From NCBI GenBank assembly GCA_025594325.1, contig JANHCV010000014.1, forward strand, positions 682,001 to 746,000: a stretch of DNA of 64,000 bases, read 5' to 3'. The position numbers and the translations under genes are program-made. Each line of letters starts with the position of its first letter. Position 1 is the stretch's first letter. Positions 3,316 through 32,690 of the stretch are shown one piece after another. The notes beneath the pieces are model-generated. The model was not told the origin of the DNA and did no database searches. It was given only the letters and a program-made list of their open reading frames with translations. Origin of the DNA: Blastocladiella emersonii ATCC 22665 (taxonomy: Eukaryota > Fungi > Blastocladiomycota).

Positions 3316-3387
3316 ATCTCCTCAAGAGCGTAACAGTCAAAAAAGGTGAGGTGGGAGGTAGCGTAACGTTTATGAAAACCTTTTATT

Positions 3388-4900
3388 TCACTCGACGCCC
3401 GCTGCAACCGCCCGAGGCGAGCGCAGCTCTGGCGTGATTGTAAGTTGGGCCGCGAGCAGCTGTAGCTGTGTCGGGCACACACCGTACAGCAGCTCCCAGA
3501 GCAGTTTCGTCTCAAGTACAGCATCAGGGATAGAGCGTGCGCCAAACAGCTCGCGGCCCACGTTCCCGCGCATGACCTGGCCTGTGTAAAACTTGATGAA
3601 CGCAGGCGAAAGGCAAATCCGCTCCATTCCGAGCATGTTCCACTGCGGAACTGAGTACAGCGCCGTGTTCTTGGTCAAGAAGAATGTCCATGGCGGGTTA
3701 CTCCCACCCTCGTTTGCCTTGATTGAAACCACGCGGATTGTTCGCGCCACGTTGATGCCAGTGTGAACGTTTTTGGGAAGCAAGGGAGCCAAGCTCGACA
3801 GGGCATCGATCTTGTTGCTGATCGGCGACAAGCGCGTATCTCAATCGGCGAGCAGTTGAACGAGCTGACCCGAAAAGGCGATCTAGTTGCCAAACTTGGT
3901 CTTTTCCAGGTCGATTGTGATGGCCCCCACCCAGCAAGCGATTAAAGCCTGTCGTCCTTTAACACAGCGTCGGCCCGCGCGGCTTTCGCTTCGCGTATGC
4001 CCTGGGACCTTCAGCCTGTCGACTTTACGGTGCTTGGGTCCAATTCTCCGCGGCTTACCCTCGAAATCCCTCGCGGCCGCGAGAAGCACCGCGTGAAGCC
4101 GGTTCCGCTGGAGGACCTTGCTCAGAACCACGGGGCGGCCGCGCTCATGATCGATGGAAAGTTGCAGCGCTTCCTGCTTCCGTGCCCGGGCCGCGCAACG
4201 AGCGCAGAATTCGACCGCGTGAGCAACCGTGTTTCGGTTCAAAGCGACCTGGTTCCACAGACGGTGTGTCTACAGCTTGGTCTTGGGCCGCTTGTTCCTA
4301 GATTCGCTCTATCCCCTGTCCAATTCGGCAAAATTCTCGTTCCCGTCCTTTTATTCGAGCTTGGGCTTTACGCACTGTACCCGAACAACCGTTACGTGTC
4401 AAGTGAAGCAGGCACGGTGCCCGTGCAAAAGCCTGCAGCGGCGGACGGTAGCAGCATGGGCGCCCGTGACGTTACTGGGCTCAAGGTCCTTTTTCACCGT
4501 GTTGTACGCGTGGCAGCAAAAATCTACGATCGCCCGTTCGCCGTCTAGTTTGTGGACGAAGCTCACAACGACCTTGCGATCCTCTTTGTGAACCGACCCG
4601 TTGTCATTGCGCCCCAGGGCAAAGCGCTTGAGGCCACGCCGGCGCTTGACGTCAGCTACTTTTGCGTCCCCGCGCACCCGTCGAAATCGGCCCCTTCGTC
4701 CGCCACTCGGAACCGAGCCAAGGCGCTCCGGCGACTCGCGGAATCTGCGCAGGCAGCGTATCGAGGCCGCGCCCTCCAAGAGCTTGACTTGGTCGTGTAT
4801 TCCGGACCCCGCGCGGCTGCAGTCAAGGAGTACCTCGAGTACTGCCAAGCGACCGTTGTCGATCACTTGATCCCCGACGTGAACGTCAACCCGAAAACGA
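3388..4900 (-). pseudogene. Degenerate APE-RT-derived gene, copy 1
   Basis: ORFs 3388-3831, 3883-4242 and 4399-4866 share one register. WTFFLTKNTALYSVP..MERICLSPAFIKFY..LLWELLYGVC matches copies 2-4. The 5' boundary is approximate and upstream similarity is weak. Confidence 0.6.
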
Positions 4901-5079
4901 CAACGTTGGGCTTGTCCGCGGCGTTTACGCAGCTGCGACCTGAGCTCAAGCGAGCCCTCCTGCTCCCACTTTTCCCTACCTTGTGACCGAGCAGTCGATT
5001 TATGTAATATAGATTGATTTTGACTTACCTGTGCGAGGCGAGGCGGAAGCAGGTTCGGGCGCAGGGTAAGACGTGTGAG

Positions 5080-5100
5080 ACGCGTTGCGATATCATGTGA
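5080..5100. promoter_or_regulatory. Composite motif ACGCGT-N7-TCATGTGA
   Basis: ACGCGT at 5080-5085, TCATGTGA at 5093-5100. Confidence 0.5.
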
Positions 5101-5681
5101 GAGTGGTCATGCGGTCAATCTCTGTTCGTATTCGTCTGCATCTCGCGGGTTGGCGAACAATCCCACATCGCGCGATTCTTGAGGGCGTACGTCGCGCGTC
5201 GGCGGGCTCATGAGCCCAGCACGGATAGTAGCTGGAACGCAACGTGGCCGGGACGAACACGCAGGTCTAGCGCCTTGTGGTCGTGGAACCACACGCGTGA
5301 GTCGAGGGCTAAAGCCCTCTTTCTAGACCGGGTCGCTGCCGGATAGGGTGCCGACGCTCACGTGAGCGCCATGCACGTGAGCGACCCGAAAACGCGTGAC
5401 AGACGCGTCGTTTCTCATGTGACTGCTGTGGCGCAACGCGTCCAGGCCTTGCACGTGATCGGCCTCGGCCCAACCCGCGGAAGCGCCGCGCGGCGCCAAC
5501 CACTCAAGGGCGAGCGGAGCGCGTTGCACCGACTCGCGTGCTTCGCGAGCTTCTGAGTTCAAGAGGATCGGAGCGAAGTGAACGTAGGAGAGCGAAAAGG
5601 ATATCTTTGTGCGGGAGGAAACAAGAGTCTGCGCGAGTCTGCGCGAGGGGAATGAACAGAGTCGGGGCGGGAGGGAGTGCA

Positions 5682-6725: not shown

Positions 6726-6742
6726 AGACCCACTGCGAGCCG

Positions 6743-9700
6743 ATGATGATTCACTCGAACATGGACGCATGGTTCCTCACGTCTTTCGACACGCCCATCG
6801 TCGCGTTCTACGCGACCAAGTACTCGACCAAGGCGCGCGACATCATCGAGAACCACGCCGCCATCATCGCCGCGTACAAGGCGCAGCACCAGCGCTTTGA
6901 CGCCGAGCCCGACGCCTTCTCGCGCGGGCACAAGAAGCTCCTCTCGCTCGCGTACCACATGTCGGCGAACTGCATGGAGGTCCCCGAGACCATGGCCGCC
7001 CTGTTCCTGCACACGTCGGCCGCGGGCATCTTCTCGCACAAGTTTGCGCCGCTGCTGCTCTACCAGGGCATCAAGTGGGTCGAGCTCGCGGGCGTCGCTG
7101 CCGGCGAGGCGACCAACGAGGACGTCGAGTGCATCGCGTCGCTCATCAACGTCGACGGCAAGCCCATGCTAAACGTCGCGCTTCACGACTACATCTTACG
7201 GCCCGCCGAACTCGAGCGGCTGTCGTGGTACGACTTTGTCCGCACGTGGTCGCGCGTCGCCATGCCCAAGGAAATGCGCCAGGTCCTGGCCGATGGCGGC
7301 CGTGTGGAACCCGCTCAACCAGACCTCGAACCCGGCACCGAGATCCAGCCCGGCACAAAGTTCTGCTTCATGGCCGACCATCCGCTCGCCAAGCCGTTCG
7401 AGCTGCGCAAAAAGGACGTCGAGGCCGTGCCCAAAATTGCTGGTCCGCACCTCCCCGACCCGCGCAAGTTTGCCGACGTCGCTGGGTCCGAGGAAAAGTA
7501 CTGCCGCATGGCGCTACTGCTTCTCCAGCACTTCCGCGTCTCGAGCGACATCCTCGACGCGCAGGGCTCCGCGATCGGCAAGTTCAAGGCGTTCAAGGAG
7601 ACGCTCGAACCTGGCCACCCAGCGCTCGACCATCTCGAGTACGCGCAGGAGTACTACTTCAGCCTTGACGGCGCTCGCGAGTTCCGCGAGCTTCGCGATC
7701 GCGAGAACGCCGAGCTCGCGGCGCAGCTGTCGCAGGAGGAGAAGGGGGAGCTCTACGTTCCTGACCGCGACGGCGAAACCAGCTCGCGCAACCAGTCGAC
7801 CACCGATGACGGCTCTGTAGCCGCTTCGTGGACCATGTTTGGTCAGTCGGAGAACGACATTGTTCTCGACCCGACTATCGTCAACTCGGACGTGGAGGGC
7901 ATCCTGGCCGACGACGGCGAAACCGAGGCGAACCTCGAGCGCATAGAGAGCGTGACCTTTACGCTGATCCCTGGAATGGGCCACGGCATGATGGGCACCC
8001 TGCTCTTCCCCGACGTGCAGCCGTTCGATGTCAACGCCGCGCCGCCGCCGCCGTACCTCAAGACACCCATCTCGCCGACTGACGTCGAGAAGATCATGGC
8101 TCAGCTATGCGCTGCCGCGGCTCAAGGTTATACGACTGCGGATGTCGGCGCCGTACCTGTCGTTCCCGGGCCCGGGCAGCCGCCCATGATCGGGATTGTT
8201 CCCGCAGTGCCATCCGGAGCCTCGACAAACACATCTCAGCATGGTATCGACCCGGAAATGGCCGTCGACGTGCCCGAACCAGAACTCGGACCAGCCGTTG
8301 ACGTTTGGCGCAGCGCCTTCACGACCACGCCAACGGATCCTGACGCGCGCGCGCGGTTCCTCGTCACCAAAGCCGCGGACTCAATCAGCAACATTGCCTA
8401 CAACACACGCGGCGACGAGTGGAGCGACGAGAAGCAGCGCACTGTGCACACGCCCGCGTACGCGAGCCTCGCGCAGGTCTCGCTCAAGTTCAACCTCAAC
8501 GAAGAGCAGCACCGCGCGTTCGTGCTCTTCCTCATGCCGCTCATCGACACCTTCATCGGCGGCAACGCGGGTATCGCGGACGCTGCGGCCTCAACCGAGC
8601 AGAACGTGATCCTGTTGGGCCGCGACGACGTCCAACATGTCGTCGGCACCGCGGCCCTCCCGCCCATGAGCAAGGACCGGACGCCGATCATCCTCACCAG
8701 CTCGGGCTGCACGCGCGTCGTCGATGCAATCCGATACTTTCTCGCGTCCTGGAACCGGGAAAAGTGCCTCATGGTCATGGCCATGACCGGGATCGCGGCC
8801 GCCAACATTGGCGGTACGACCATCCACGCCGCGTTCTCCTTCTCGCTAAGGCCGAAAGAAAACAGCCCGGACGTGGCCCGTTTGCGTACCGATCCTGCGG
8901 TTGCCATCGCGTGGAAAGGGCGTCTCGGCGTCGTCATCGACGAGTTCTCCATGTGCGACGCAACTTTACTCGGGCGTATCGACGTGAACCTGCGCCTCCT
9001 GCGGCGGTGCGACGAACCATTCGGCGCGTGCATCGTCATGCTCGCTGGCGATCATTTACAGCTGCCTCCCGTCAACGGAACTGCCCTGTACAAGGTGCCC
9101 GCCGTGCTCAACGACGCGCCGGACTCGTTCTACCTGACTGCGCATGACGTCAAAATCAATTGACGGTCCCCGAGCACCTGGATCGAGGCCAGGTCGCGTA
9201 CTGGCGCACTACACGCGCTGTTCGTCTCGTGAAGAGCAACCGATTTGTCGACGATCCTCCATGGGGCAACGAAATGGACGCGCTCCGCCTCGTCGAGGCG
9301 TTGGACACGCTGTGCGACCTGATCAACTCGCGTACGACCGCCCAGCTTCAGCAGCAGGTCGACGAAAACGGCAACAACGTCCTCAAGGAGATCCTCAAGA
9401 AGCCCGGACTCACGGTTATCGCGCCTGACAACCACACGCGCCACGCCTTCAACCTGCTCTACACGCGGCTCGCAGCAGCAAACCCGAACCGCATCGTGTT
9501 CCAGATCAAGGGCAACATCACGCGCCCGCGTGATAGGCGCCGCACGCGTGAACGCGTCGCCATCTGCGACAAGGACGTGTTCCGCCTCGGAGGAGAGCCA
9601 GAAACCACGACTGAACTGCCGGCCATCCTCGAGCTCTTCGTCGGAATGGAGATGCGCGTCAAGACCAACCAGTGCGTAGCAAAGGGGTGCGCGAACGGTG

Positions 9701-10519: not shown

Positions 10520-10818
10520 AGTACTAACGTAGTGTATTCCATCATCTAATCCATCAATAGCACGATTTCCATAGCTCGATCACCTAAATCTCCTGTGCGG
10601 GACGCACACGCGACAGCACCTCCACCACTCGTGCACCATACGTGGCGAGGGGTTTAGCCCTCGATTGAAAGCCAAACGCGAAGCGTTTAGGTGCCTCAAG
10701 TATAATTGGCAATGGCGGCGGACGGTTCGTCAACCGCGGCAGGGCTTGAGTGCCACCTGTCGTGTGCGGTTAATTACGCGCCGCTCGCATGCAGCCGAAA
10801 GGGAGCGCCTCATCGGAG

Positions 10819-10839
10819 ACGCGTCGGAAGATCATGTGA
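10819..10839. promoter_or_regulatory. Composite motif ACGCGT-N7-TCATGTGA
   Basis: 90 bp upstream of ATG 10929. Confidence 0.6.
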
Positions 10840-10928
10840 CAGCCCCGTGACCGTGTCCATACCCTGGCGGTGTCGTTGGGAGCGAAGTCGCCGTCGGCCG
10901 CCGCTCTCCTTCGTCCTCGCGGTCGCCC

Positions 10929-13353
10929 ATGAATCGAATGGAAAAAGCGCGAGACTCCCTGCAACTCGTCATGGATGTTACTGCGGATGCTGGGGCGCCA
11001 GCGGCGGGGCTCCTTGCCCAGCTCTCAATCAGCGGGGTCAGCGCCTCGCTTGCTGCGCTTCCCGACTTGGTGATCACTTCCGTTCTTCAACTCGCACGCC
11101 CACGTTCGGTGAGCTGTACCGCATCGCGCTGCTTTGCCGAGGCCGCGCGTGACTCCCGCCTTGCTCTCGCTTGGGTGCCCGTTGCACTTGGCCGCCTTGC
11201 GAATCCGCAGCTCGCCCTCAAGTATGTTGTTGCCCGTCCAGGCCGAGTCTATTCCGAGCTTGCGTTTGTTCTCGACCAATCCGATTTTAACTCGAAACTT
11301 TCCAATCCAGTCGAGGGGATTGCGCGCCCAGTCCCGCAACTTCTTCTCGCGCTGATGCAAGGCTCCATGCTTGCACAGCGCCAACGCGTCAACCGAAATC
11401 TTTCGAGCTTCTTGAATATGTCCAAGCAGGCTTTGCACGAATACCTCACTGTTGCCCCTGCCACGGCAGCTCAAAGTGGTCCCAAACTAAGCGGTTATTC
11501 ACACGCGCACCTCGTCGCCCCATTCCATCTTCTGACCGCTGCCGTACGGCTTAACGATCCCGTGCTACTTCAAAATCTGCTTGATATCGTGGCGCGCGAT
11601 ATTCCTCTCATTTTCGAGGTGCAGCTGCCTGCAGCTCTCTGGTGGAAGCTGACTCTTCGTGGCGACCTCCTGTTCACTAACTACGACACAACTGGGTCAC
11701 TTGGGAATACGTCGCGGTCGATTTCGTTCATCTCGCAGCTTGTCATCCTCTCTGCCGTCCTGTGGAGATGCCAGAGCTTCCCTCTTCTGACCGACTCGCG
11801 GTTTGGAGTTGACCTCGACATCCTTCCACACGCCCTTGGCGACAATTCGGTTGCTCCCTTCGCAATCCAGTACCTTGCTGAACGGGCGCAGTCCCCCGCG
11901 ATTTGCATGCCCATCTTTGACTGGCTCATGCGCACGCGCAAGCCAGGCGTCTTGCGGACTCCTAGTGGGACGCACATCGCATCAATTTTAGTTTGCCCTG
12001 CTCTCAAAGAATTTCTCCGCTGCACTGCGACGCAACATCCAACTTGTATCAGCGAGGGTTTGGGCGAGCGCGACTTTGAGCTGCTCTCTCACAAGTATCT
12101 TACCTGGACCCTTGACGACATTGACTTCGATCTGCTCTTAACATTGCATTCACTGAATCTCGTCACGGACGAAGCTTGGACCCATATTATCTTCCTGGGG
12201 TTGCTCCAGGACAAGGGGCCTGGCACTGATTTGATCTTGTCGTTCCTGGCCGAGCTTCCTTTTGCTGGACTAAAAGGCAGTGTTGCTGGAGGTATGCTCA
12301 AATTCTGCTCTATATTCACCAACCAAGCGGGCGCTGACAAGAACTCGCGCGCCGTCCTTAGCATTCGCCCAAAGTCTCGCGCGCTCCTACACGGACAGTC
12401 GTGGCGCGAGTTTTGTGCTCCGTTTTGCCCACCGCAAATTCGGACACGATTACCTTGAAGGCGTATCGCCCGTCTACGCCATGGGGATCAACCATGTGTT
12501 CGCTTCCGCTTGCAATCATCTTGGTAAATCCCGCGCAACGGCATTTGTTAAGTCCACTCTTGGCCGGGTATTTGCCTGCACCAAGGAGCAGGTTGAGCCT
12601 TGGTATCTCTTCCTTCTCGCAAACCACATGATCGATCAGATCTCATGTCTCCAGCTGCCGGGTCTGGACGAAGTTGCGTGGCTTCCCGTTGTTGTTTTAA
12701 GCGACCCAATGACACGAGGTCCAGCGCTTGCCCTTATCCGTCAAAGCAAGACTGCACGCTCATTCCTTGTGGCCATGCTTCTGAGCCAGCTCTCAAACTC
12801 CTCGACTTGGCTTCCGCATGGGGATTACCAGCGCTGCCTACTCCAAGCACACGACTTGTGGTTTGCCGCCATGTCCGACCTTCAGCGGATCTTGGCCGAG
12901 TTTGACCCAGACACGAAGTCAGCGTGGTTCCCACCTCTTCTCCTGTGTCACATCTACGAGGGCATGCTGATTGAGCCTGAAAATGGGCTCAACAAGTTGC
13001 TTTCCTCGGAACTCGCGGGAAATGCCAGTCCAACCCTTTGCGCGGGGTGCGGGGCTAGATCGGTGCTTCGCATTCGCCAGACGTACGAGTTCCTTGCACG
13101 CAACCAGCTTTTTGCAACCTTAGCGGCGTGCGGACGCGCGTCCGTCGTACCTCTTGCATTTTGGAAGCTTGTGCCCGAAGGAGAAATTGACCATGTGAAA
13201 GATTCCTTTTGGGTTGCCCAGATGGTCCACAAGGCCAAGGCCAAGTTAACTTCCCGCGCAGCGAACGATATTCGCAACGAGATTCACCGTATCGCTCCCG
13301 AGGCCGTGCCGATGCTCAAGTATGGTAACGTTACGTTTGGGTTGCTTTGGTGA
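10929..13353 (+). CDS. Large F-box-like family protein A (apparently intact, 2 exons)
   Basis: LAALPDLVITSVLQLARPR motif. The predicted intron 12292-12361 (gtatgc...gctgac...ttag) joins ORF 10929 to ORF 12280 in frame, at the same position as in paralogs. Family motifs MPIFDWL, CAGCG and PLAFWKLVPEG. Confidence 0.75.
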
Positions 13354-13532
13354 ACCTCCCCCGTGCCGTTATTTGATTTCAATATAATTTTTTGTTCGTT
13401 CTTGTCAAGCGTTGATCGAAGTTTGGACTCAAAGCCGTGGAAAGAGGTGCAGTCTTCCATCATTAACACATCGCGCAAATTGACCCTCAATGTTCCTGCT
13501 TCCTTACTGGATCAATTTTTGTCGGCTCAGTC

Positions 13533-13578
13533 GCGCGTCGCGATATCATATGATGGCCTCATGTGTGGCGCAACGCGT
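13533..13578. promoter_or_regulatory. Orphan copy of the composite motif (GCGCGT-N7-TCATATGA...GTGGCGCAACGCGT)
   Basis: Same position relative to the APE-RT stop as the 3272 and 32770 copies, but no ankyrin gene follows. Confidence 0.5.
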
Positions 13579-13643
13579 CCTCTCGCCGCTATTTGGCGCA
13601 AGCGTACCGTCAGTGAACGGGAGCAATAATCTATATTTAGAGG

Positions 13644-15575
13644 TTAAAAGACGAAAATTTTCGCGCACCTAGTGTAGGCGTTGTTCGTTTTTGATGACCA
13701 CAGCGACGGCGAGCCCTTGACCTTGACCGCGAGCAGCTGCAGCTCGCTGAGGCACACGTCATACACGATCTCCCAGATCAGATCCGTCTCCACAACGGCC
13801 TGTGGGATCCCGCGCCCGTGGAACAGCTTGCGGCCCAGCTCCTCGCGCCTCATGTGGCACGTGTAAAACTTGATGAAGATGGATGGAAGGCAAAACCGCT
13901 CCATTGCGAGCGTGATGAGCTCCGGCGGGACCGAGTACAGCGCCGTGTTCTTGGACAAAAAGTACGGCCAAAGCGAGTCCCTTGCAGCGCTGAGAGTGAT
14001 AAACCCGGTTTGTAGCGCCACGGTTCGGATCGCGTGCAGAACCGCCCCGCTTTCGGGACCGTCGGAATCGAGCGAGACTTTGAGTTCCGGCGCACCGCAC
14101 AGCACACCGTACGTGGCGAGGGTCTCGCGGATCCGCGTAACAAAAAGCTTCATGAGCAGCGAGGCGGCGGCGGCGGACAGCAGGGGGTTGGAGCGGAAGC
14201 GGATGACGGGAATGAGCCCAGGTATCACTACGTATGAGGGCCCTGAGTCAGCAGGCGAAGGCGTGACACGCGTGCGTAGGCACAGTGCGAAGAAGTCGCA
14301 GAGGGTCGACGCGGCCACGTGGCCAGCGTTGGCAATGAGCCGCGTCGCGAGATCGGTGATTTCTGGTCCAATGTTCATGGCCGCGTTCAACTCTTCGACC
14401 GTTGGCGGGTCCATCAGATTGGTCCAGATGTCGGCCGAAACGTGGTCAAGCGGGGCGAACGCGCGGGTCCATGGGCCGAAAAGCAAAACCTGGCTATCAG
14501 CACCAGGCACGGACGCACCATTTTTGTTCTTGATGAGCCATTCTTGCGCATGACGCGCAGGAAGTCCCCACGGTGTAAGGAAATTCGAAGCCAAGCTGTT
14601 GAGGCCAAGCTTAAGGTAATCAATCCTTCGGCGGGCCGATCTGACGCGACGTGTGGCCAAATCCGTGGTGCGGAAACAGGAGCTCACTTTGCTTGGTCTT
14701 GAGAAGCAATTTCACACGATCGACTGCGTCCTTCCACGGCTGATTGAGCTTCACCGGGACCCGTCGTCTAACGTAGCGCGCGAGAAGCGCGACATGTTTC
14801 TTGGACGCGCCCGCCTTGCGCAATCGCTTGGCCTGCAAAGCTCAGAGCTTTGGCATCCAGGTCGTCGAAATGATGAAGCCAGGTGAGCGTCTGCGTATAC
14901 GGATCGTTACCCAGACGTGCATTAAACTCGTCCGCTCGAAACGGCATCACTCAGAAGCAAGTCCGCGCAGAAGCCTCGACGAGGAGCGAGATCGAGTCCC
15001 ACGCCTTGCTGACGTCGCTGCCAACCAGGGACGCCCGTTTGATGCTTCGAGAGAACTTGGCCGCGGCGCGCTCGGTAAAGTATCTTCATGGGCTGGATGA
15101 AAAGGTGCCCCTGATTGGAGGTTTCCGGGCGAAGGAACGGCGCAAGCGGTGCTTTAAACAGCACGATGAGGCCGCCGGGGACTTGCGCCGCGGGGACGCC
15201 AGGTTGCTCGAAGTAATGCGTGTACGCATGGCGACTGACCCAGCCGGGTAACAATTCGCAAGCACCGCCGTCGTCGTCGGCTTCGGTGAGGCAAGTGTCG
15301 ACGAGAACAGCGATCGCCGGATTCGGGCGCGCATCCAGCAGGGCTGAGAGCGCGGCAAGCTTGGCCGGTCTCGTCTCAGGATCGGCAAGCGTGCCAGGGT
15401 GCTGAATCAAGATATCCATGTGCTCGGGCGGCGGGGCGCCCCGAGCGACTGGCCGCGGGCCGGACCGCTCGGCGGGCTTCGAATAAGTGTCCGCGCAAGG
15501 CCGCCAGCTCGCGGCAGCAGATCCGCTTGGGCGCTAGGTGCCAGTTGCATGAGGTCTAATGCATTCGTTTTCCAT
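13644..15575 (-). pseudogene. Degenerate APE-RT-derived gene, copy 2
   Basis: ATG at 15575 (MENEC) with a TAG at codon 14, in frame with MDILIQH (15419). APE-like AIAVLVDTCLT and GGLIVLFK. RT-like WTRAFAPL..PPTVEEL, LWPYFLSKNTALYSV and GIPQAVVETDLIWEIVYDVCL. Several frameshifts. Confidence 0.8.
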
Positions 15576-15772: not shown

Positions 15773-17904
15773 TCACTCCGCCTCCTTGCCCCCGCGCTTG
15801 ACCTCCTCCGCGAACCCCGCCAACGCGCCGAGGACCACATCATACACGATCTCCCACACAATCCGCGACTCGACACGTCCCCGCGGAATCCCTTGTTTCC
15901 CACCCATCACGCCCTGCACAGACAGCTCCACAAACTCTTCAGGCATCCGCACCCGCCGCATCGCCCCCTCGACCACCTCGCGCGGGACCGCGTACGCCGC
16001 CGTCGTATGCGACGCGAACACCCGCCACGGCGATGTAGGGGAAACACACGCGAGCGCGGCGGCGGCCTTGACGTGCGCGTTTGCGGCGCCGTGGCGCGGG
16101 CCGGTGGTCGTCACGGTCTTGAGCTGTTCGGCGCCGCGCAGGATGTCCGGGTGCGCGTCGAGTACGGTGCGGACGCGCTCCGTCAAGATTTTGGCGAGGA
16201 CCGCAGCCAGCGCGCCGCCCAGCGTCGTTGAGCGGACGCGGTCGACAGGCACGCGCGACGACGGGAACACGACGTACGGCCGCGCTCCGCCCTCCACCGG
16301 TTTGGGCAGAGTTCGCGTGCGCAAGCACTCGGCGAGCGTCGCGAGCAGGACCCCCGCGGCCGTCTCGCCCGCGTTCGCGAGGAGCTGCGCCGCGAGATCG
16401 CTCGACTCGGGCCCCGCGTTGAGCGCGGCGTCGAGCTCGTCGCGTCGGCGGGCGCATCAGGCCGGCCCACAGTTCGGGGTTGACGTGTGCGGCGGGGGGC
16501 GAACGCGCGGGTCCACGCTTCCGCGTCGTGGATCCACGCGCGGGCGCGCGGGGTCGCGGCGACGGTGGACGGCGTGGCGGCGGCAGCGAGGGTGTGCAAC
16601 CCGTCGTGCGCAGGCAATGGGCGCGCGGCGTAGTCGTGCTCAGCGAGCAAAGCGGCCCGTTTCGCGGTGACGAGGTCCGCGATGCGTTTCGCCGCGTCGC
16701 GGCGCAGCTGCGCGTCCGCGTCCTTGGCGGGTTTCGCGGCGAGCAGGTCGAGGTCCGCCTTGCCCGCGCCGCACTCGATCGCGACGAGCCGCGCGCTGCG
16801 GTCGAGCCCCCGCGCCCCGCTCTTGCCCTTTTTACTGAGAGTGCGCAGCGCGCCGAGCGCCATCGAGTACACGTCCTGGCCGCGCGACGAGACGAATTTG
16901 GCGGGGTCGAACGGCTCGAGCGGCAAGTGCTCGTCGGCCGCTGTGTCAACCACTTCCACAAGCCGCGCCCACCCCGCCGCGGTTTTGGGGGAATCCATCT
17001 CCTCGACGCGGTTCGAGAACGCAAACCAGTCGTCGAACCCGGCCGCGCTGGCCTTGAGCATCAAGGCGCCGCGGCCGGCGAGCTCGAGCGGGATGCGGAG
17101 TTTGGCACTGCTGACGAGGTAGTGGCCGAGCGTGTTCGCGAACACGACGGCGCCGCTGGCGTCGTGCACGGAGAAGCCGTCGGCGACGTCGAGCGCGTGG
17201 TGCGACGCCATCACCCGGCCCGATGCGCGCGGGGTGGTGACGCCGAACACGGCGGCGACGTCCACGAGCCCGTGCTTGAGCAACGTCCGCGCGAGCGCGT
17301 CGGTGAACGTGCCCGCGACAAGGACACCATTCCCCTCCTCGCCGGCCCCACCGCCGCACGCGGTCGCCGCGATACGCACGACGACCCGTTCCGTGCCCTC
17401 ATCCCGCTCCCCACCCAAATACACCCCAACAACCACGAGCTCACGCTTCCCTCCCACTGCAAACCGCTGCACGAGCACACTGTCCGCGTACCCCTCATCC
17501 GTCGCGATAAACGCCGCGAACCGCTGATTCACCAGGACCGCAACCCCTCCAACCCCGCCCTCACTCCTCACCTTCGTGCTCCGAGAAGCGAACCGCGCGT
17601 CGGGCGGGAGAAGGCGGCGGCTCGCCGCTCTGTCGAGAACATACCGCGTGTTGGTCAAGACGACGAGGGCGGCGGACGGGTACGCGGTGACGAGGGCGGC
17701 GGGGGCGGACGGGTCGGCGGCGAGCCCGTTTGGGGAGGTGTGGAGGACGAGGTCCATGCGGCGCGCGAGGAGGGCGGCGGGGGTCGTGGACCACGCGCCG
17801 TAGGTCGGCGCGGGTTTGCGCGGGCGCGGGCCGCCGTTGTTGGGAGCGGGGTCAGCGCGGTCGGTGGGATGGGTTGCAGCAAGTCCAGTGCATTCGTTTT
17901 CCAT
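15773..17904 (-). CDS. APE-RT-derived pseudo-enzyme, copy 3 (GC-rich, probably intact)
   Basis: About 710 codons. APE-like LVVLTNTRY, GGVGGVAVLVN, LVVVGVYLGG and VLVAGTFT. RT-like WRVFASHTTAAYAV and GIPRGRVESRIVWEIVYDVVL. I see only two frameshifts (~16440-16500), one at a C run, which may be assembly errors. Confidence 0.7.
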
Positions 17905-23237: not shown

Positions 23238-23499
23238 AGCAGGGCGTGGACGGGAGGGTTGAGGCGGATGTGTGTAGCAGGTAATCTATGTGCCCCCACT
23301 GTTATGACTCGTTACCTGTTCGACGTCTTGGGCTTCCGCCCCGCCGGGCTGCCCCTGGGTTGTATCGCTCATACCGCACTCGGCCTTGGACTGGTATGCT
23401 CTGTGTACTGGTAAGCGGCACGATGGTCATGGAACCGCAGTCGCAGCTCGCGAGCAAGCAGCCCGCGATCGTCTACGAGATCAATGAAATCTCGAACTT

Positions 23500-24215
23500 T
23501 GCGCATGCGGTTCCTCGCAATGAAGGCCCACACGATGCGCGGCGACTTGTGGAATGAGGCGGAGCAGCGCACCAAGCACTCGCCCGCGTACGCGCAGGTT
23601 CCGCTGGGATTCAACCTCAACGAGGACCAGCACCGCGAGTTGGTGCTCTTCCTCAAGCCGCTCATCGCCACGTTCATCGGCGGCGACAGCGGTGTCGCTG
23701 AGGCCGCCGCGTCCTTGGATCCAGACGCGCTCGCGTTGGGCCGCGACCAGCCAAACGCACCGGCTATCGCGTCGTTCCCGCCCATGAGCAAGGGTGGTTC
23801 GCCGATCACTCTCACCGACTCGGGCGGCACGGGCATCTCGCGCGTCATTGACGCGATCCATCATCACTTACTCGTGTCCCGGAACCGCGAATAGTGCATG
23901 ATGGTCATGGCCATGACGGGTATCGCGGCCGCCAACGTTGGCGGTATCACCATCTACGCCGTGTTCCAGCTCTCGCTCAAGAGCAACAGGCTCAGGCCCC
24001 GACATCAAACGCATCCGCACCGACTCTGCTGTCGCCAGTGCGTGGCGAGGACGTCACGCCGTACTCGTCGACGAGTTTCCCATGTGATGACGATCAAGAC
24101 GCGTCCGCGCGACTTTCGTTGGGTCGAAGTCTCCCGTGCGGGCCGCTGCTTCAACGTGCCGGAGGGCTTTAGCCCTCGATTGAAGACCAGACGCGGAGCG
24201 TCTAGGTGGCTCGAG
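23500..24215 (+). mobile_element. Second Helitron remnant (helicase fragment plus 3' terminus)
   Basis: 23500-24090 aligns by eye with 8340-8950 (FNLNEDQHR, MAMTGIAAANVGG). 24162-24215 repeats the 3' terminal structure seen at 10647-10700. Confidence 0.8.
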
Positions 24216-24278
24216 GAAAATCGTCCGGCGCTCGCGTGAACGTTCCGCGCGACAGCGAGGCTCAAAGACAAGTCCCTC

Positions 24279-24304
24279 ACGCGTTTCGATATCATGTGAC
24301 GCGT
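24279..24304. promoter_or_regulatory. Composite motif ACGCGT-N7-TCATGTGA, displaced from the gene at 30263 by a transposon
   Basis: Removing 24320-30181 places it about 100 bp upstream of ATG 30263. Confidence 0.55.
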
Positions 24305-24645
24305 CCCGCGAGATCGTGTCATCGCAAAACCTGCAGCAGCGGTTCGGGGCCCGATCGCGGCCGGATCGCGGCCAGAAAGCAGCATCTGGGCCGGATCTGT
24401 GATATTACCCTGACGCGGACCGGATCTGGCTCAGACGCCGCGCGGGCGGCGCGAGCGGGGTCGGGGCAGCGTCTGGGCAGCGTTGGAGCGGTATCCGGCC
24501 CAGATCCGGCCCTGATCGTGCCGTGATCCTGCCCTGATCTCGCCCAGGTCCGGGACAGAGGCTGCCGTGATGCCGCCGCGAAGTGCGCACCGATCGTGTC
24601 ACGATCCCGCTCGCATCGTGGCCGGATCCGGGCACACGTCGCAGT

Positions 24646-24742
24646 CAGATCCTGGCCGTATCGTCGCCGGATCCGGGCCATGTCGCGCTCAGATCCTGGC
24701 CGTATCGTCGCCGGATCCGGGCCATGTCGCGCTCAGATCCTG
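24646..24742 (+). repeat. 44-bp tandem duplication in the subterminal array
   Basis: cagatcctggccgtatcgtcgccggatccgggccatgtcgcgct x2, plus a partial third unit. Confidence 0.9.
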
Positions 24743-24894
24743 ACCCAGTCGGGGAGTCATCCGTAGCATTCGGGTATATATATATACAATATCATCATAT
24801 CGGAACACGCTTGGGCGGCGGGCCGGCCGGCCTGCCCGCTCGCCCGCCCCCACCCCACGGTGCGACAGCGCGTGCGCGCGCGCGCGCCCTTGGC

Positions 24895-26679
24895 CTACTT
24901 CTTGGCCTTGGTCTTCGTTCTGCGCGGCACCGAGATGGCGAGCGCCGCGAGCGTCGCCGCGCGCTTGGCGCTGGGCTTGCGCACGCGCGTCGACTTGGCC
25001 CGCGTCGCGGGTGGCGCGTTCTTGACGTTGTTGGTCGGGTCCGTCTCCTGCGTGACTTGAGCATCGGACCACGCTGACTCGTCGTCCTCGGCGCGCTCGT
25101 CGTCCTCGATGACGCCACCCTTGGACGCCGCCGACTGGCGCAGCTTGGCCTCGGTCTCGCCGTCGACCACGCCCGCTGGATCTTGAGCAGCAGCCGCAGC
25201 ATCGACGGCCGCGGCCGGCGAGGTGAGCCCGTGTGCCGCGCCGACTTGGGGCTCGACCATGGACCTGCTGGTCAGTGTTGCACCAGCACCGACACCTGCA
25301 GCAGCGGAGCGATGGGCTGGGAGGTGGGAGCGATGGCATGAGCGTCAGCGTCGGTCACTCGGACGCGGAGACAGCAGCGAAGGGAAGGGAGCATACGACG
25401 AGGCCGCTGCTGCAGTGGCGGAGGTGGTGGTGGCCGAGGTGGTGGCGGGGTCGGCGAACGTGGACGACGAAGGGGACTGGCGTCGCTCTCGCCGCCCCCG
25501 TCATCGTCGTCGGCGTCAGCGTCGGCACGAGGGAGCGGGGACGAGGGGAAGGGCGCGGTCGTAGTCTCGACGGGCACGAGCGAGGGCGCGCCGGTGGCGA
25601 GCGGGACCGCGGCCGAGGTCGAGGCCGACATGGTGAGCGAGGCCGGGCCGCTACCGTTGCCGCTGCGCGCGAGCAGCTCGAAGATACCGGGGTCGAGGCC
25701 GTTGTGGGCAGCGAGGTGAAGAGGCGACGCCGGGTTGCCGGGGTTGATGAGCATCGACGACGTGTTGCCCGACGGCATCTCGACCGCGTAGCCCGAGTCG
25801 GAGAAGGGCACGGCGCCGGCGGGTACCGATGACGAGGCCGAGGCCGCTGCTGGTGCCCCGGCGATGGCGAGGCCGGACGCGGGCGTGGCGGTGCTCGGCG
25901 GCGGGGCGGTGAACCACGCGAAGCCCGTACCGTACCCACGTCGGGCACACGTCTGCGGAACAGCACCGAGAAGCCGGTCACCTTCTCGGTAAAGTCGGGT
26001 TCCGCCACGACCTTGCGGAGCTTGGTGAGGTTGGATTGCCGGTCCGACTGGTTGCGGAAGTCACCCCACCCCTTCGCGGGCGACAGGGCCGAGCCCAGCT
26101 AGGCAGCGCGCGCGCGCAGGGGTGAGCAGGCTGCAGAAAGAAAGCGGCGGTGATGGCGGAGGCGCAACGTACCACGGCGAGAAGTAGAGCGAGGAAGCAC
26201 TGGGCGCGGTTGACCTTGAGCACGGCCCTGTCCAGTTCCTGCAGCACCAGCACAGCGATGGATCCAAAGGATACATTCGCTATGAGGGCAAGGTCGGAGG
26301 GGGAGGGGAGGGGCGAATGAGGGGTACGAGTCGTGTCGAGGGATGGGCAGACGCACGCAACGTACAGTTCACGGACGACAGGAGGACGCCGTCGAGCAGC
26401 ACCTCGAGGATCGTGTTCGGGTTGCCGGCCGCGTCGAAGAGCACGTTGTTGGTCCACGCAGGCTCGAGGACGCCCATGTTGCCGGCCTTGGCGGCCTTGA
26501 AGGCGGCGTGCGCCGTGTCCCAGGTCCCCGAGGCGATCGAGGCGTTGTTGACCAGCTTCTGCTTGATGAACTTGAGGACCAGCGTGAAGAGGTTGGAGCT
26601 CGTCCGCCGTCGTGTCGAGCGGCAACACGGCGGGCGCCGAGCCGGACGACGGGCCGGGCGCGGGTTGGTGCGACGCCAT
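24895..26679 (-). CDS. Transposon accessory ORF, multi-exon, unknown function
   Basis: High-GC3 exons (NLFTLVLKFIKQKLVNN..., ANVSFGSIAVLVLQELD..., ...RRTKTKAKK-stop) separated by GT-AG introns. One apparent frameshift near 26600. The gene model is tentative. Confidence 0.5.
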
Positions 26680-27074
26680 GACGGGCGACGCTCGGGACGC
26701 GAGATGGCGGTGACGGTGGCGGTGGAGGGCGGGTGGGTCGGATGCCAGCAGGTCGAGGGCGGCGGGTGTCTCGCGGGAGCGGAAGCGACCGAGGCCGAGC
26801 AGGCGCAAAGTCAAGAGAGGGGAGGGAGAGCGGGAGCGGGCGGGGCGGGGCGAGGGGCGCCCCCTCTTCGCCGCCGCTGTGCAGCACGCCGCCGAACGCG
26901 CAAACGCGCCAACGCGCCAACGCGCCAATCACGTGCTCAACGCGTCGCTGCCTTGACGCCTCGCCGCCGCGCCGCAATCTCTCCCGCGCGCGCACGCCAA
27001 CGCTGGGCCGCCCACGCCCAAACTAGTTCCCATGTAACTGCCCGCAACTCGACCCGTCCACCCGTCCATCCATC

Positions 27075-29036
27075 ATGCCGCCGGCCAAACCCGGCCGCCC
27101 TGTCTCCCGCCGCCACGCGGCCGCTGTCGCCACCGCTGCCTCTGCAGCCGCCGCGCCGGCCTCGTCTTCGTCTTCGTCATCGTCGTCGGTCGCAACGAAC
27201 CCGACCGCTTCCACTGCGCCTGCCGCATCCGCCGCGCCCGCACCGTACGCGGCGCCGCCTCGCCGGAGCGCCCGCCCGCGCAAGCCCAACCCGCGCGCCA
27301 ACCTCAGCTGTATCCCGCCCTGCACCTTCAAATCCGATTCGTACGCGGGCCTGCACATCCACGAGGCCAGCTGCCACGTCGTTGACGCCCTCCTGAACCA
27401 AAATGCACGGGCCCCAGCCGTCGCGTCTGGGCACCAGCCGGGTGAGATCCGCCGCGCTGCGCCGTCTGGTCCCGGCGGGGTGTTTGCAGCTCCGCCACCA
27501 CCTCCGCTGCCACCTCCGCTACCACCGCCGCAGCAGCAGCCTCAGCAGCACTCACAGCTCGAGCAGCAGTTGCAGCAGGATGTCGTCATGCAGGACTCGC
27601 CCGAAAACGACTCGCAGGATGGCGTCGGCTCCGCCGAGGACGCCGGGACCGTGACCAACCTCAACGGCGACGTTGTCATGGAGGACGCCAACGCCGAGAC
27701 TGTGACCAACGGCGCGCCCGCTCCTGTCGCTGAAACCACGTCCGCCGCGCCCGCCACGACCGTGCTCGCCTACGGCGCCAAGCTCCCAATTGGCAAGCAC
27801 CGTGTTCCGGGAACGACGCCGCCCGTGCCCATTGGCCACGAGCCGATCCCGCGCGCCGTCCAGCAGTCGCCCACCCTCACCGACGCGCCGTGGGACCCGT
27901 TCCCGGACTTTGTGTCGTGGCGCTTTACCTTCTTCTGCATGGTCGAGGCCGCGCTCTCGGACCGCGAGATCGACGCGCTCATCAACCTGATCAACCTGAT
28001 CGCCGCCATCGTCATTGTCAACAAGTTCGGCAACCTCAACATGTTCCCCGACCGCCTGCTCGTCAAGCTGCCCAAGGGCATCGTGCAGCGCGAGCTCGTC
28101 AAGAAGAGCGCCTTCTACCGCGAGTTCAAGTGCTCCGTGCTCACGGACTCGGATGGCAACAAGTACAACTTCATCACGCTCAGCGTCGTTCCCTCGCTGC
28201 TGCGCGGGTCCCGCCGCGGCGTCACGCTCGACTGGCTCGGGAACAAGTTCCCGAACCTCCTGCGCGGCCTCACCAAGGCCATGGCCAAACACGTCCTGCT
28301 CGACATCGAGTACGTACTCCCGCATCACTGCCCTCTCTCGAAGTCATGCACTGACGCCACTCTCCTGTTCGCTCCCTGTCCTTTTCTGCCACCCAGCAAC
28401 CGCGACGCCAACGCTGCGCTTCGTCCCAAGGACCTTACCGATGCCGCCGGCCGCGTGTCGCAGGTCCGCGGGTTCCAGTGCATGGAGATCCATCGCACGA
28501 GCGACCTCGACCGCCAGCCGATCGTCGAGATCCTCAAGGCCCGCGTCACCGAGTCCCATGGTCGCCTCGTCAACGACTTTTTTGTGGTACGTTTAACCTC
28601 GCCTTGTTATCTTCCTGCCGCTTTACACCACTCGTTACTGATCGCCTCCCCCTGGCGACAAACCCAGGCTCGGCGCGGCAACCAGGGCGGGCTCAACATC
28701 ATGGAGCCCATCCTCTTCCTCGACTTTGCCGTCAAGGGCTTTGACGACCGCTTCCAGGTCGCCGTCGGTCGCTGGTTCTCGCGGTTCAAGCCCAACAGCA
28801 ACACCATGCTCGCCCGCGACGCCATCACTCACCTGATCCGGGTGCGCCGCGAGGACGCCCTTGCCGTCGTACCCGTTCCCGCCATCGTCGGCCCTGTCCA
28901 TCTCGTGCCGACGTTCCTCAAGCACCTCGTCAACGGGAAGCCCAAGAAGAAGCCGTACTACCACCTTAATTGGTTCATCGGCCGCGAGCAGTTCTTCCAG
29001 GAGTCTGACACGGCCTTCGACTCGATCCTGCGCTGA
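27075..29036 (+). pseudogene. Plavaka-like transposase lacking the catalytic core
   Basis: N-terminal CIPPC..GLHIHEASC finger, then WDPF..W....LSDREIDALI, and C-terminal VPVPAIVGPVHLVP..YYHLNWF resemble Plavaka transposases as I recall them. No room for or sign of a DDE core after ~28200. Probable in-frame introns near 28310 and 28590. Confidence 0.6.
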
Positions 29037-29236
29037 GCAACGCTCGCCCACCATCCCCACCCCGCCGCGCTCGCCCCTCCTCTCCACCACGTTTGCAACC
29101 GCCATGGGCTAGTCCGGCTCGGCTTCATTGCATTCTTTGCCTCATCCGAGTCTGTCGGTCGCGCACGGCTGGTCGCACACGGCTGCAACTTCACGCGCGG
29201 TCCCGACGGTCGCCGGCCCACCACCATCTCCGCCGA

Positions 29237-29326
29237 CGCCGGTTCTCGCTCGCCCGCGGCTCCGCCAACGCCGGTTCTCGCTCGCCCGCGGCTCCGCCGA
29301 CGCTGGTTCTCGCTCGCCCGCGGCTC
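29237..29326 (+). repeat. 32-bp tandem repeat (~2.8 copies)
   Basis: cgccggttctcgctcgcccgcggctccgcc(a/g)a units. Confidence 0.9.
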
Positions 29327-30262
29327 TGTGGCGGCGGTCGCATCGGCTGCGCGCGCCGCGACCTATGGCCCGCACTCCGCCTACTCGTTTTCGCGGGTCG
29401 ACGGGCATCATCGACAGCGCTGAGCCGCCCGACAAGCGTGCCGCCGCGCGCGACCGTGCGTCGGCGGCTCGCCGCGCCTTGGCGCTCGTCGAGATCTCTC
29501 GCGCGCGCGTCTTGGGCCCGCCGCGCAGAAGACGGTGGCGGTGAAGCCGTCGCCGCCGGATCGTTCCGACACGCGCCACCTCGCTCAAGACCCGGCGCGG
29601 GTCAAGTCGCCGCCGTCCTCGCGCGCCGGACCTCGCGCTGCCGCCGCCGCGGACCGTGCCACCGCAGCGGCCGTGTGGCCGGCCGGGCCGACTCGCGGCC
29701 ATCGCATCAGCTCAGCAGCCACCGCTACGCACGGTGGCCGCCGCCGCCGCGGTGGTCGCTGCTGCCGCGTCCCCACGCTGTCCACCAGTCCCTGGTGGGC
29801 GGGTATGGCGTCGCCCGCGGCGGGCATCGCGACCACGTTGCGCAGCGACTACTCTCGCTCGCCCTCGCCCCGCGGATCGACCCATAGCAATCAATACATG
29901 CATTTGATACTTGACACCGCGTCCCACCGTCCCGCCGCCGCGGCTCGCGGCCATGGCAGCTGCAGCTCGCGGCCAAGTCCCCCGTCTGGGCCGGATCTGG
30001 GCCTGGCAACCAGATCTGGCCCGGATCTGAGCCAGACGGCTCATCTGGGCCGGATCCCGCCCCGACACCCGAGCCCCTCCGCGCGCGCCCACCCCGCCGC
30101 CCGCGTCTGAGCCGGATCCGGCCCAGAAGCGCAGTCTGGCTCAGATCCGGGCCAGAGCGGTGCTGCAGGCTTTGCGATGGTGGCGCGCCCTGCGGCACGA
30201 GAAGCGAGGCGCCGCCGAGATCGCGTCCCCGCTCCCCGCCCGCATGCGCTACACTCGAGACC

Positions 30263-32690
30263 ATGGAAAACGAATGCACTGAACTTGCTGCAATGCGCTT
30301 GGACTCCTCGCAGCCCGACTCGGAACCTGGCGAGAGCGACTCCGACTCGCCGACGACTGCGCCGACCGCGGAGCTTCTCCCCGCCGCCAGCAAGCGCGCC
30401 AACTTCCCCGTCCGCATGGACATCTTGGTGCAGCACGTCGGCGACCTTACCGACCCCGAGACCCGGCCCGCCAAGAATGCCGCGCTTCTGGCGCTCCTTG
30501 ACGCGCACCCGGAGACGCCCTTCGCCGTGCTCAACGACACTCGACTCACGTCTCCCGAAGACTCGCGCTACTTCTTTGGACTCGACAACACGGACTGGTT
30601 CCGGCGCGATATCCTTGTCCCTTGCGACGTCGAGGACGGCAGAGGTGGGAATCCGCCTAGCTCGCGCGAGGGCGGACTCACCCTCCTGTTCCGATCGAGT
30701 ATCTCGCAGCGCCTGCGCCCCGCGAAAGAGTTTCCTGGCTTCGCTCTCGTCCAGCCCGTCAAATTGCCGAGTAACCGAGAGCTTGTGTTGATCCTCGTTC
30801 ACTTCACCGACGGCCTTGGCGGCGACGACTTTGACGAGGCCGTGGCGTTTGTCGTAGACACGTTGCAGCAGGCGTGGTTCAAGAGCTATCCGGTCGTCGT
30901 CGTGGGAAGCGATTATGGCGGTGCTTACCGCGGCCCGGTCGTTACGAATCGGATTGCCAGGTTCGGGCTCGTCTAGCTCTCCACCATCTTTGGTGCCGCG
31001 AGTCCCGCGGAGCTTGGATCAACCTCGAGTACTGCGATCGACCAGCCGGCGGGCCGGGTCGACTTCGTCATGGCCTCGCCAAATGCACTCGAATTCATCG
31101 AGCCACCGAGCACGGACGCCACGTTTATCGCGCAGATTCGCGGAACGCTCGACAAGCCTGACTTGCTTAATCCCGCGCTCCATGTTCCCACCTCACTCGG
31201 CCGCTTCCTTGACCCATCAAGATTGTTCAGCATCGCGCCGATCCCAATGCTGTCACCATTAACACGAACCGATTCAACTTTGACCACTGGTTCTCGTTCA
31301 CCGCTCACCTCGAGAGTGAGCTCGGTGACACCCCGCTTGTTCTGGGCGACGACGTAAACGACGCGTGGTCCGCGATCTCGCTGCTCCTGGACTCGGCGGC
31401 GCGCGCGTGTTTTGACGTGAAGCCGTTTGATGTGGCCGAGTTCAATGACCTGCTCGGGCACGACGAGTACGCCAAGGCGCTCAAGCTGCTCCAAAAAATG
31501 AGCACGGGTGCCAGGATGAAGCTCAACCGCGTCGGGCACAACTTGGCGTTCCATGCAGGCGCGCCCGCCGAGGATCTTGCCCTGCTTGAACGCTACCGGA
31601 GAGACAGGCTTCCTAAGGACATGTACCTGGAATGGAAGCGCGCGGCGCGCAAGGTCAAAACAGTGCTCCGCAAGAAACGTACCAAGTTGAAGCTTATTTA
31701 CTTCGAGCCGCATCTCAAATCGAGTGGGGCGACGCCGTCCAAGAGCTTCTACGTTCTCGGTCTGCTCAATTTCACGGACAAGAAGGCTCCGGCGTTGCCT
31801 CGAGTGGCCGAATTCGCGCGTGCTTGGCTCGATTCTTACGCCGGCGAATCGACTTTGGGTGCGGACGGAAACCTTTCGCTCTCAGGTCAGTGGGCTCGCG
31901 CGTTTGCTCCGCTTGATCACGTCTCCGACGACATTTGGACCAGTTTGATGGCCCCGCCCACGGTCGAGGAGCTTACTGCCGCCATGAACAGCGGTCCCGA
32001 GGCGACCGATCTCGCGACGCAGCTCCTCGCAAACGCTGGAGAGACGGTGACATCGACCCTTTGCGATTTCCTTACACTCTGCTTGCGCACCTGCACCTTG
32101 CCCTCTCCCGCCGAGACAGACCTACCGTACGTCGTGCTCCCGGGAATCGTGCCCGTCGACCGCTACCGCTCCAGCACTCTGCTCTCTGCATCCGCGTCGC
32201 TGCTCATGAAAATTCTCGTTGACCGGATTCGCGCGAGCCTGGCCACCCACCGCGTGCTCCGTGGCGCATTGAATCTCAAGTCATTGCTTGGTGCCAGTAG
32301 CGACGCGACGCCGGCAGCGTGGTGCGCGCTGCGCACCGTGTCCAATGCGACCAGGGAGCTTGCACTGCGCGGGCGCACCGACTCGCTCTGGCCGCACTTC
32401 TTGTCCAAGCACACGGCGATACACTCGGTCCCGCCTCGGCTGATCGCGCTCGCGATGCAGCGGATCCGGCTGCCGCCTGCTTTTGTCGAGTTTTACACGG
32501 ACCAGGTGATGCGCGAGGACATGGGCCGCAAGTTGTTCCACGGGCGCGGGACCCCGCAGGGCGCGTCGAGACGGATCTGATCTGGGGCCTGTTGTACGAC
32601 GTGTGCCTCAGCGAGCTGCATCAGCTTGCCGTTGAAGTCGGGAGGATGCCTGAGTTGTGGTCTGCCCCGCGCGAAGATGATCACGAATAG
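30263..32690 (+). pseudogene. Degenerate APE-RT-derived gene, copy 4
   Basis: MENEC start. MDILVQHVGDL, AVLNDTRLT, GGLTLLFR, PVVVVGSDY and GRVDFVMAS (APE-like). LWPHFLSKHTAIHSV and GTPQG..LIWGLLYDVCL (RT-like). TAG at 30974 and frameshifts near 31200-31330 and 32560. Confidence 0.8.

Follow-up and report, generated by a model that had tools for sequence, protein, structure and literature searches.

Disrupted copies of a truncated, catalytically inactive LINE endonuclease–reverse transcriptase in Blastocladiella emersonii: probable pseudogenes from a family with a single origin

Host genes derived from the capsids and transposases of transposons are well known; we know of no host gene family descended from a truncated, catalytically dead endonuclease–reverse transcriptase of a long interspersed nuclear element (LINE), and a literature search returned no description of one. 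Comparable described sequences are the DIREs of trypanosomatids and the HAL1 half-LINEs of mammals, which are dispersed, retrotransposed copies with varied truncation. The sequences examined here lie in a 64,000-nucleotide stretch (C6:682001-746000, hereafter the window) on contig C6 of the 32.65-Mb, 21-contig genome of the fungus Blastocladiella emersonii ATCC 22665. They resemble DIREs and HAL1 in being LINE-derived and in having lost catalysis, but differ in their fixed 3' truncation and start, in their apparent spread by local DNA duplication, and in having a sister branch apparently under selection for an open frame. A further parallel is the reverse transcriptase (RT)-like domain of Prp8, which has an RT fingers/palm fold without the polymerase residues; Prp8, however, keeps fingers, palm and thumb within a huge, universally conserved protein, whereas the present sequences are a front half, young, fast-evolving and confined to one species, and the likeness implies no direct kinship.

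The four copies in the window are probably pseudogenised members of a Blastocladiella-specific family that arose by one truncation of a LINE ORF2 (second open reading frame). Copies 2, 3 and 4 share a single layout: a MENEC start, a part resembling an apurinic/apyrimidinic endonuclease (APE), a linker, and the front half of an RT. An earlier note on this DNA had described a four-copy family of this layout, which fits these three copies; copy 1 is a 3' fragment, and the family as a whole has five members in subfamily A, to which the window copies belong, and nine in subfamily B. The extent of 3388-4900 that the note gave to copy 1 was too long, as tblastn with copy 2 finds family similarity over 3412-3750 (46% identity over 118 amino acids) and nothing family-like in 3750-4900. 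The copies and their lesions are as follows.

3388-3750, minus strand: copy 1, 3' remnant, from RT motif A (LTKNTALYSV) to the tail, stop at 3388
13644-15575, minus strand: copy 2, whole (RT part, linker and APE part)
13644-14687, minus strand: copy 2, RT-derived part, an open 347-codon frame; NCBI model H9P43_009380 lies here
14680-15575, minus strand: copy 2, APE-derived part and linker, MENEC start at 15575; 11 bits with the APE profile
15534-15536 and 14680-14950, minus strand: copy 2 lesions, respectively a TAG in frame at codon 14 and two or more frame changes
15773-17904, minus strand: copy 3, whole (RT part, linker and APE part)
15773-16441, minus strand: copy 3, RT-derived part, with ASHTTAAYAV, GIPRGRVESR and YDV, stop at 15773
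16439-16500, minus strand: copy 3, double frameshift that interrupts the reading between AFAP and DELDAAL (three-frame reading)
~16494-16499 and ~16439-16446, minus strand: copy 3 lesions, two frameshifts 50 nt apart, the former in a run of six C
16450-17904, minus strand: copy 3, APE-derived part and linker, MENEC start at 17904; TNT replaces ET and GTFT replaces GDxN
30263-32690, plus strand: copy 4, whole (APE part, linker and RT part)
30263-31198, plus strand: copy 4, APE-derived part, with MENEC start, NDT and GSDY; 29 bits over APE profile positions 9-221
31216-32690, plus strand: copy 4, linker and RT-derived part, tail in the third frame, end at 32690
30974-30976, ~31198-31216 and ~32553-32565, plus strand: copy 4 lesions, a stop and two frame changes, the second of these inside motif B

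A six-frame genome search with the RT-like ORF of copy 2 led to 37 places, several of which are long ORFs with the Pfam domains RVT_1 and RNase_H (in locus L004 also Exo_endo_phos), and the intact APE-RT-RNase H LINE ORFs of the same genome (L002, L004 and L005) were taken as the reference for homology. In tblastn these ORFs match copies 2, 3 and 4, and copy 1 weakly, solely over L004 residues ~505-757, that is, from the pre-RT region to motif B, with E-values of 1e-16 to 1e-27 for the RT part. The alignment is colinear through the pre-RT motif WxRAFAPLDHV, motif A, the AMRRVxLP helix, motif B and the YDVxLCE helix; copy 2, for example, reads WTRAFAPLDHV, a dead motif A (LSKNTALYSV), motif B (GIPQAVVETD) and then the tail. 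The motif strings quoted in the earlier note (TNT/NDT/VDT, GTFT/GSDY, LSKHTAIHSV, LSKNTALYSV, LTKNTALYSV and ASHTTAAYAV) are all present, and alignment against FEDKSKAFD, the motif A of the intact elements, agrees with its observation that all four copies have lost the motif A aspartate; this residue is absent from every family copy, and the window copies read FLSKNTALY or similar, without IPK. The stop soon after motif B is likewise borne out, as all copies end 20-36 codons after YDV, ~40-55 residues short of the position of motif C (FVDD or YMDD in intact elements; FVDD at residue ~812 of L004). A downstream exon with YADD, which the note had named as a possible objection, did not appear: relaxed tblastn of the window and five loci for motif C, thumb or RNase H gave noise only. 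What remains is an RT core reduced to the fingers and part of the palm, without the catalytic aspartate, unlike the complete core with catalytic aspartates of RT-related cellular genes whose RT still works (rvt type, telomerase). The Pfam searches proposed for the copies (Exo_endo_phos, RVT_1) had a different outcome from that anticipated, with no match even at E≤1 for ten ORF pieces of the four copies; Pfam also assigned no family to the subfamily B proteins, and a profile of the truncated family found no RT among PDB sequences.

Relative to the intact LINEs, subfamilies A and B are colinear from the pre-RT motif AFAPL.HV through the RT motifs up to B and the YDV.LCE helix, with the linker and, in A, the APE also shared, but they lack motif C, the thumb, RNase H, the Cys motif, the motif A aspartate, IPK and the APE catalytic residues. 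The intact LINEs are dispersed, often near contig ends, whereas the A and B members are clustered on one contig and carry a 9-residue deletion. Among the reference elements, the 1730-aa ORF of L002 (2325-7517, minus strand) reads YMGD at motif C where its close relative L005 reads YMDD; this long open frame may already be catalytically impaired.

The endonuclease-derived part is visible by profile and by structure prediction. Pairwise BLASTP of copy 3 against the N-terminal part of L004 is weak but colinear (E 4e-4), and a clade-specific APE profile that draws on the endonuclease domains of ~45 related LINE ORFs aligns over ~210 colinear positions, with scores of 29 bits for copy 4, 26 for copy 3, 11 for copy 2 and 7 for the fifth A copy. 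The catalytic glutamate is replaced by asparagine or aspartate and GDxN by GTFT or GSDY, which leaves the catalytic residue set of an EEP domain (Asn, Glu, Asp/Asn and His) incomplete. An AlphaFold2 model of copy 3 residues 1-330 has a predicted local distance difference test score (pLDDT) of 73-92 for residues 50-220, the C-terminal half of the APE domain being poor (pLDDT <50). Among the matches of this model, Foldseek ranks the LINE-1 ORF2p endonuclease first (1vyb_B, E 7.7e-7) and other EEP nucleases next; the structure check suggested for copy 3 thus recovers an APE/EEP fold, with the qualification that the alignments for this model and for the subfamily B model below included true LINE sequences and bias both toward those folds. 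On the profile scores and the model, copies 2, 3 and 4 carry a predicted, decayed AP-endonuclease homologous to the APE of LINEs.

Searching the whole genome by tblastn, as the earlier note had advised, added one further A copy and nine B genes, all on C6, and no intact A copy:

C6:563.8-565.1 kb: fifth A copy (L007), 118 kb upstream, MENEC start retained; lesions, a large internal deletion and a TGA
C6:337.8-348.3 kb: B array 1, seven tandem copies (NCBI H9P43_009270-76)
C6:1051.5-1056.4 kb: B array 2, two copies

The B genes have 318-385 codons and no APE; their N-terminus, basic and of the form MN[ST][SP]G[LP]G..., lies in the linker, their RT segment is that of the A copies with identical residue losses, and their last residues before the stop are EVVAARGQV. 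Like the window copies they have this segment, these losses, the end point and the clade; unlike them they are without an APE, are mostly open and have the EVVAARGQV ending. Both subfamilies share a deletion of ~9 residues between motifs A and B compared with the intact elements. In a maximum likelihood tree, A is supported at 96 and B at 99, and the joint clade, on a long stem of 0.9, has an SH-aLRT support of 99; it is sister to the L002/L005 LINE lineage, together with a few metagenomic LINE ORFs. Because A and B form one clade (99) and share the deletion, the loss of IPK and of the motif A aspartate, and the end point, a single truncation event is indicated, so that the proposal of one truncated and inactivated retroelement ORF is upheld. 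All 14 members lie on C6, and the other genomic matches that were fetched (L015-L022) are ordinary LINE copies that continue through motif C into RNase H with 76-98% identity to L004 or L005; copies of the parent LINE are up to 97.7% identical. As every one of these matches is an ordinary LINE copy and A and B are one clade, the truncated form arose a single time and is present on C6 only. When 1.84 billion representative proteins were searched with a profile of the truncated family, 263 matched at E≤1e-3; the C-terminal tail is reached solely by B. emersonii models, the rest being 1300-2600-aa LINE ORFs or fragments (metagenomes, Rhizophagus). A word-based protein search matched only this genome's own gene models.

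Selection probably maintains the open frames of subfamily B, whose sequences evolve fast, and it is for B only that domestication is supported. Open frames with a common start and stop are present in about six of the nine genes, whereas a simulation of neutral substitution left a B frame open in only ~2% of trials once 0.2 changes per site had accumulated. At the protein level the last nine codons are conserved, with variation in third positions and in the stop codon, and the 3' flanks are unalignable. The domestication proposed in the earlier note finds support in this sister subfamily, with its open frames and conserved motif, and not in the window copies, none of which is intact. One B protein was modelled with AlphaFold2 (pLDDT 81), with helices throughout residues 57-340. 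Foldseek returned nothing below E 0.3 for this model in the PDB, whereas VIA-align placed it with R2 (9dou_A, Z 9.7) and LINE-1 ORF2p (Z 8.7-9.2), followed by Prp8 (6zym_A, Z 8.0; 3zef_E, Z 6.7) and group II intron RTs. The model aligned to L1 residues 424-693, ending just before FADD, and the RT kinship of B is visible only through VIA-align and the in-genome LINEs. Since only the fingers and a partial palm remain, without any catalytic residue, the intact relatives are predicted to be unable to polymerise, and attachment to RNA, DNA or a LINE protein would be their most plausible activity.

The A copies present a different state. Each of the five has at least two lesions or is reduced to a fragment, no intact ORF was found, and the lesions differ from copy to copy and are independent. 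The published assembly was built from 6.4 Gb of PacBio HiFi reads (~190x) with Pilon polishing, and its annotation was made ab initio via funannotate, RNA-seq being unmentioned in the paper (PMC9730499); neither the A/B family nor transposons are described there (PMC9730499). Four sequencing runs are listed, all from one sample and none recorded as RNA. With HiFi coverage of ~190x and Pilon polishing, the lesions are unlikely to be errors and are most likely real. The frameshifts of copy 3 are not explained by an intron because both lie within 60 nt of continuous homology, and the same two frameshifts tell against the earlier view of this copy as nearly intact. That note had also mentioned two frameshifts; copy 3 alone has two, and every copy has two or more lesions. 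The NCBI models H9P43_009380 and 009381, which cover copies 2 and 3, bridge the breaks by invented introns that omit conserved residues. Because of the stops and frameshifts in a HiFi assembly, we infer that the window copies are pseudogenes from which no full-length protein is now made.

Past coding constraint on the A copies is nevertheless visible, and most of their divergence arose under it: the ratio of nonsynonymous to synonymous substitution rates (dN/dS) in the RT part is 0.29-0.75 among A pairs (0.29-0.48 for pairs of A2, A4 and A5), with differences by codon position in the order p3 > p1 > p2. The dN/dS check thus speaks for constraint in the past, and no copy is intact now. The host-like GC content at third codon positions (GC3) of copy 3, offered earlier as a sign of domestication, does not serve as one: it is 0.85-0.87 in copy 3, 0.71-0.78 in the other A copies and 0.95 in the neighbouring M17 peptidase exon, but since the intact parent LINE (L002/L005) itself has a GC3 of 0.91, the value is uninformative on domestication.

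The mode of amplification can be read from the arrangement of the copies. Copies 3 and 2 lie head to tail with a 198-bp spacer from the copy 3 stop to the copy 2 ATG; copies 1 and 4 are inverted, and the genes downstream of them, 2555-3019 (minus strand) and 32911-33675 (plus strand), neither with a Pfam match, are paralogous. The spacer, the co-duplicated downstream gene and the confinement of all members to C6 point to duplication at the DNA level, and at least one duplication, judged from these flanks, is a segmental event that carried a neighbouring gene along. Amplification as a gene-like unit, as the earlier note had it, is in keeping with this. Its report of no poly(A) tail or target-site duplication is confirmed for poly(A), which is absent from the 3' flanks of the copies; target-site duplications were not looked for. 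The copies are truncated at the 3' end, show no 5' truncation and are not dispersed, unlike retrotransposed copies. A further tandem pair after copy 4 (33253-34182 and 34813-35748) forms a local paralogue cluster. The flanks and starts contain several conserved elements:

3269-3322, strand unassigned: conserved 3'-flank element, ~70-120 bp after the copy 1 stop, containing the 13-mer at 3281-3293
~13534-13579 and 32761-32814: its counterparts after copies 2 and 4, 82-91% identical versus 65-73% for the coding sequence
24288-24300, plus strand: promoter-like 13-mer, ~100 bp before the copy 4 ATG once the 24318-30181 insertion is removed
30261-30280, plus strand: invariant start context of ~18-20 nt around the copy 4 start codon

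Copies 2, 3 and 5 have related promoter-like motifs ~80-100 bp upstream, and a reverse copy of the motif is found ~100 bp after the stops of A copies, where it probably serves the next gene. The 13-mer GATATCATGTGAC occurs at 65 places in the genome, on all contigs (3281-3293, 24288-24300 and 32790-32802 among them), compared with none for the reversed control; it frequently stands after ACGCGTC and ~100 bp ahead of an ATG, as at the ORF 10929-12458. A general function as a promoter or transcription-factor motif in this fungus is probable. The flanking motif pair was also considered as the terminal inverted repeats of a DNA transposon and rejected, as the 13-mer occurs 65 times genome-wide and is absent from the B genes. 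The start context contains the 16-mer ATGGAAAACGAATGCA, which has four exact matches in the genome, all at A-copy starts: 15560-15575 (minus strand), 17889-17904 (minus strand), 30263-30278 (plus strand) and L007 3556-3571 (minus strand).

A single history probably accounts for these data. The ORF2 of an APE-RT-RNase H LINE of the L002/L005 lineage would have lost everything after RT motif B (motif C, thumb and RNase H), and this ancestor would also have lost the catalytic residues of both its endonuclease and its RT. The truncated gene would then have spread on C6 by tandem and segmental duplication of DNA and divided into two subfamilies: A, in which the dead APE persists (five copies, four of them in the window), and B, which lacks it (nine genes). 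At present B would be open under selection and fast-evolving, and A decayed. The intact relatives may be non-catalytic binders of nucleic acid or protein, possibly directed against the still-young parent LINE.

An alternative holds that the window copies are working domesticated genes whose breaks either reflect faults in the assembly, are spanned by introns, or do no harm because the RT-derived part is made from an internal start as in B. NCBI models over copies 2 and 3, the 347 open codons of the copy 2 RT part, the dN/dS of 0.29-0.48 for the A2/A4/A5 pairs, the promoter-like motif with its invariant start context, and the GC3 of 0.85-0.87 in copy 3 would all suit such genes. The models, however, were made ab initio and omit conserved sequence to bridge the breaks, there is no room for an intron where the copy 3 shifts fall within 60 nt of continuous homology, and the HiFi assembly at ~190x with Pilon leaves little place for error; moreover, five A copies are independently damaged by different lesions, and the GC3 of 0.71-0.78 in copies 1, 2, 4 and 5 is as expected for decay. 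We regard working genes as quite unlikely. That the copies are instead independent LINE insertions, decayed at random like the LINE relics of trypanosomatids, would explain the stops and frameshifts in every copy, the lack of a Pfam match and the transposon-rich setting, but not the common start, 3' end point, internal deletion and lost residues, nor the single clade with its long stem; ordinary decayed copies of the parent LINEs in this genome, by comparison, extend past motif B to motif C and RNase H and share 76-98% identity with intact elements. This explanation is extremely improbable.

It is also conceivable, though very unlikely, that the copies are cargo or part of a mobile element, either as a piece picked up by a Helitron or as a non-autonomous LINE derivative mobilised in trans. 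The region is transposon-rich, with a PIF1-like helicase ORF (6743-9163) and a related fragment (23502-24084); the 67-bp end that these share (10640-10706 and 24154-24221) lies ~100 bp before the motif upstream of copy 4, and helicase-tail fragments that are 97-98% identical sit between B genes in both arrays. Yet the flanks of the copies share only the short motif found 65 times genome-wide, and the helicase fragments, at 97-98%, are far younger than the adjacent B genes (~41% amino-acid identity) and so would be later insertions. All 14 of 14 members are on one contig, neither poly(A) nor terminal repeats were found, in a search that did not extend to target-site duplications, and the truncation is 3', unlike the 5' truncation of retrotransposed LINE copies. 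The Helitron cargo reading in particular was considered and found unsupported, the flanks being unshared and the helicase fragments younger.

Several observations weigh against pseudogenised A copies within a family of selected B genes. The lesions are those of the assembly sequence, and the A/B family is described here from genomic sequence. The RT-part frame of copy 2, with its 347 codons, is still open and might be expressed by itself. The 16-mer at the A-copy starts is identical down to synonymous sites and non-preferred GAA codons in copies that are otherwise 30-45% diverged, which suggests constraint at the DNA or RNA level and is odd for dead genes. Among B pairs dN/dS is 0.54-1.19, and selection on B is for this reason argued from open frames and conserved motifs instead; the synonymous divergence of these pairs is probably underestimated because of their GC3 of 0.82-0.88. 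Finally, no truncated orthologue from outside this genome appeared among the 1.84 billion proteins, a database with few blastoclad genomes, and since few such genomes exist this absence is weak evidence.

With the window copies taken as pseudogenised members of a family of single origin, they preserve its ancestral layout of APE, linker and RT front half and tie the B array to a specific, still-young LINE lineage. An evolutionary series can then be followed from an intact LINE to a dead APE-RT front half and on to an RT front half alone, and the window copies could provide natural inactive controls for assays of the intact genes. Fast protein evolution, tandem amplification and a young parent LINE are compatible with an antagonist or decoy role, without showing one. 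The further idea that A and B are a fast-evolving host system for interference with the parent LINE, whose RNA or protein they could bind without copying it, is speculative and on balance unlikely; if it holds, the broken A copies would be discarded products of an arms race and a record of the APE-bearing form from which today's B genes descend.

Mobile elements are frequent around both subfamilies. The PIF1-like helicase ORF in the window (plus strand) encodes 806 aa, the fragment at 23502-24084 (plus strand) is 53% identical to it, and the ~67-bp segments that follow the two are 82% identical; these pieces are consistent with two candidate Helitron-like elements. In both B arrays, two young repeats lie between adjacent genes (L009 2922-3150 and 5335-5812; L008 7789-8017 and 6128-6605; 97-98% identical), one of which encodes a 74-residue tail of a PIF1/Helitron-type helicase that NCBI model H9P43_009465 fuses to a B gene. 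The two repeats look like both ends of one element at equivalent intergenic spots.

Beside B array 2, an ORF at L009 5-958 (plus strand; C6:1049504-1050457) has DUF5906 / VapE-like / D5-type helicase domains (E 1.4e-18), which are typical of viruses and virus-like mobile elements. Numerous LINE RT matches fall 3-45 kb from contig ends (C6:5176, C21:4172, C2:2931, C4:43224, C17:33290 and C19:36150), a distribution which suggests that the LINEs of this genome accumulate near telomeres. Elsewhere in the window, direct repeats of 213 bp with 99% identity at 44413-44625 and 46793-47005 are consistent with a young pair of long terminal repeats.

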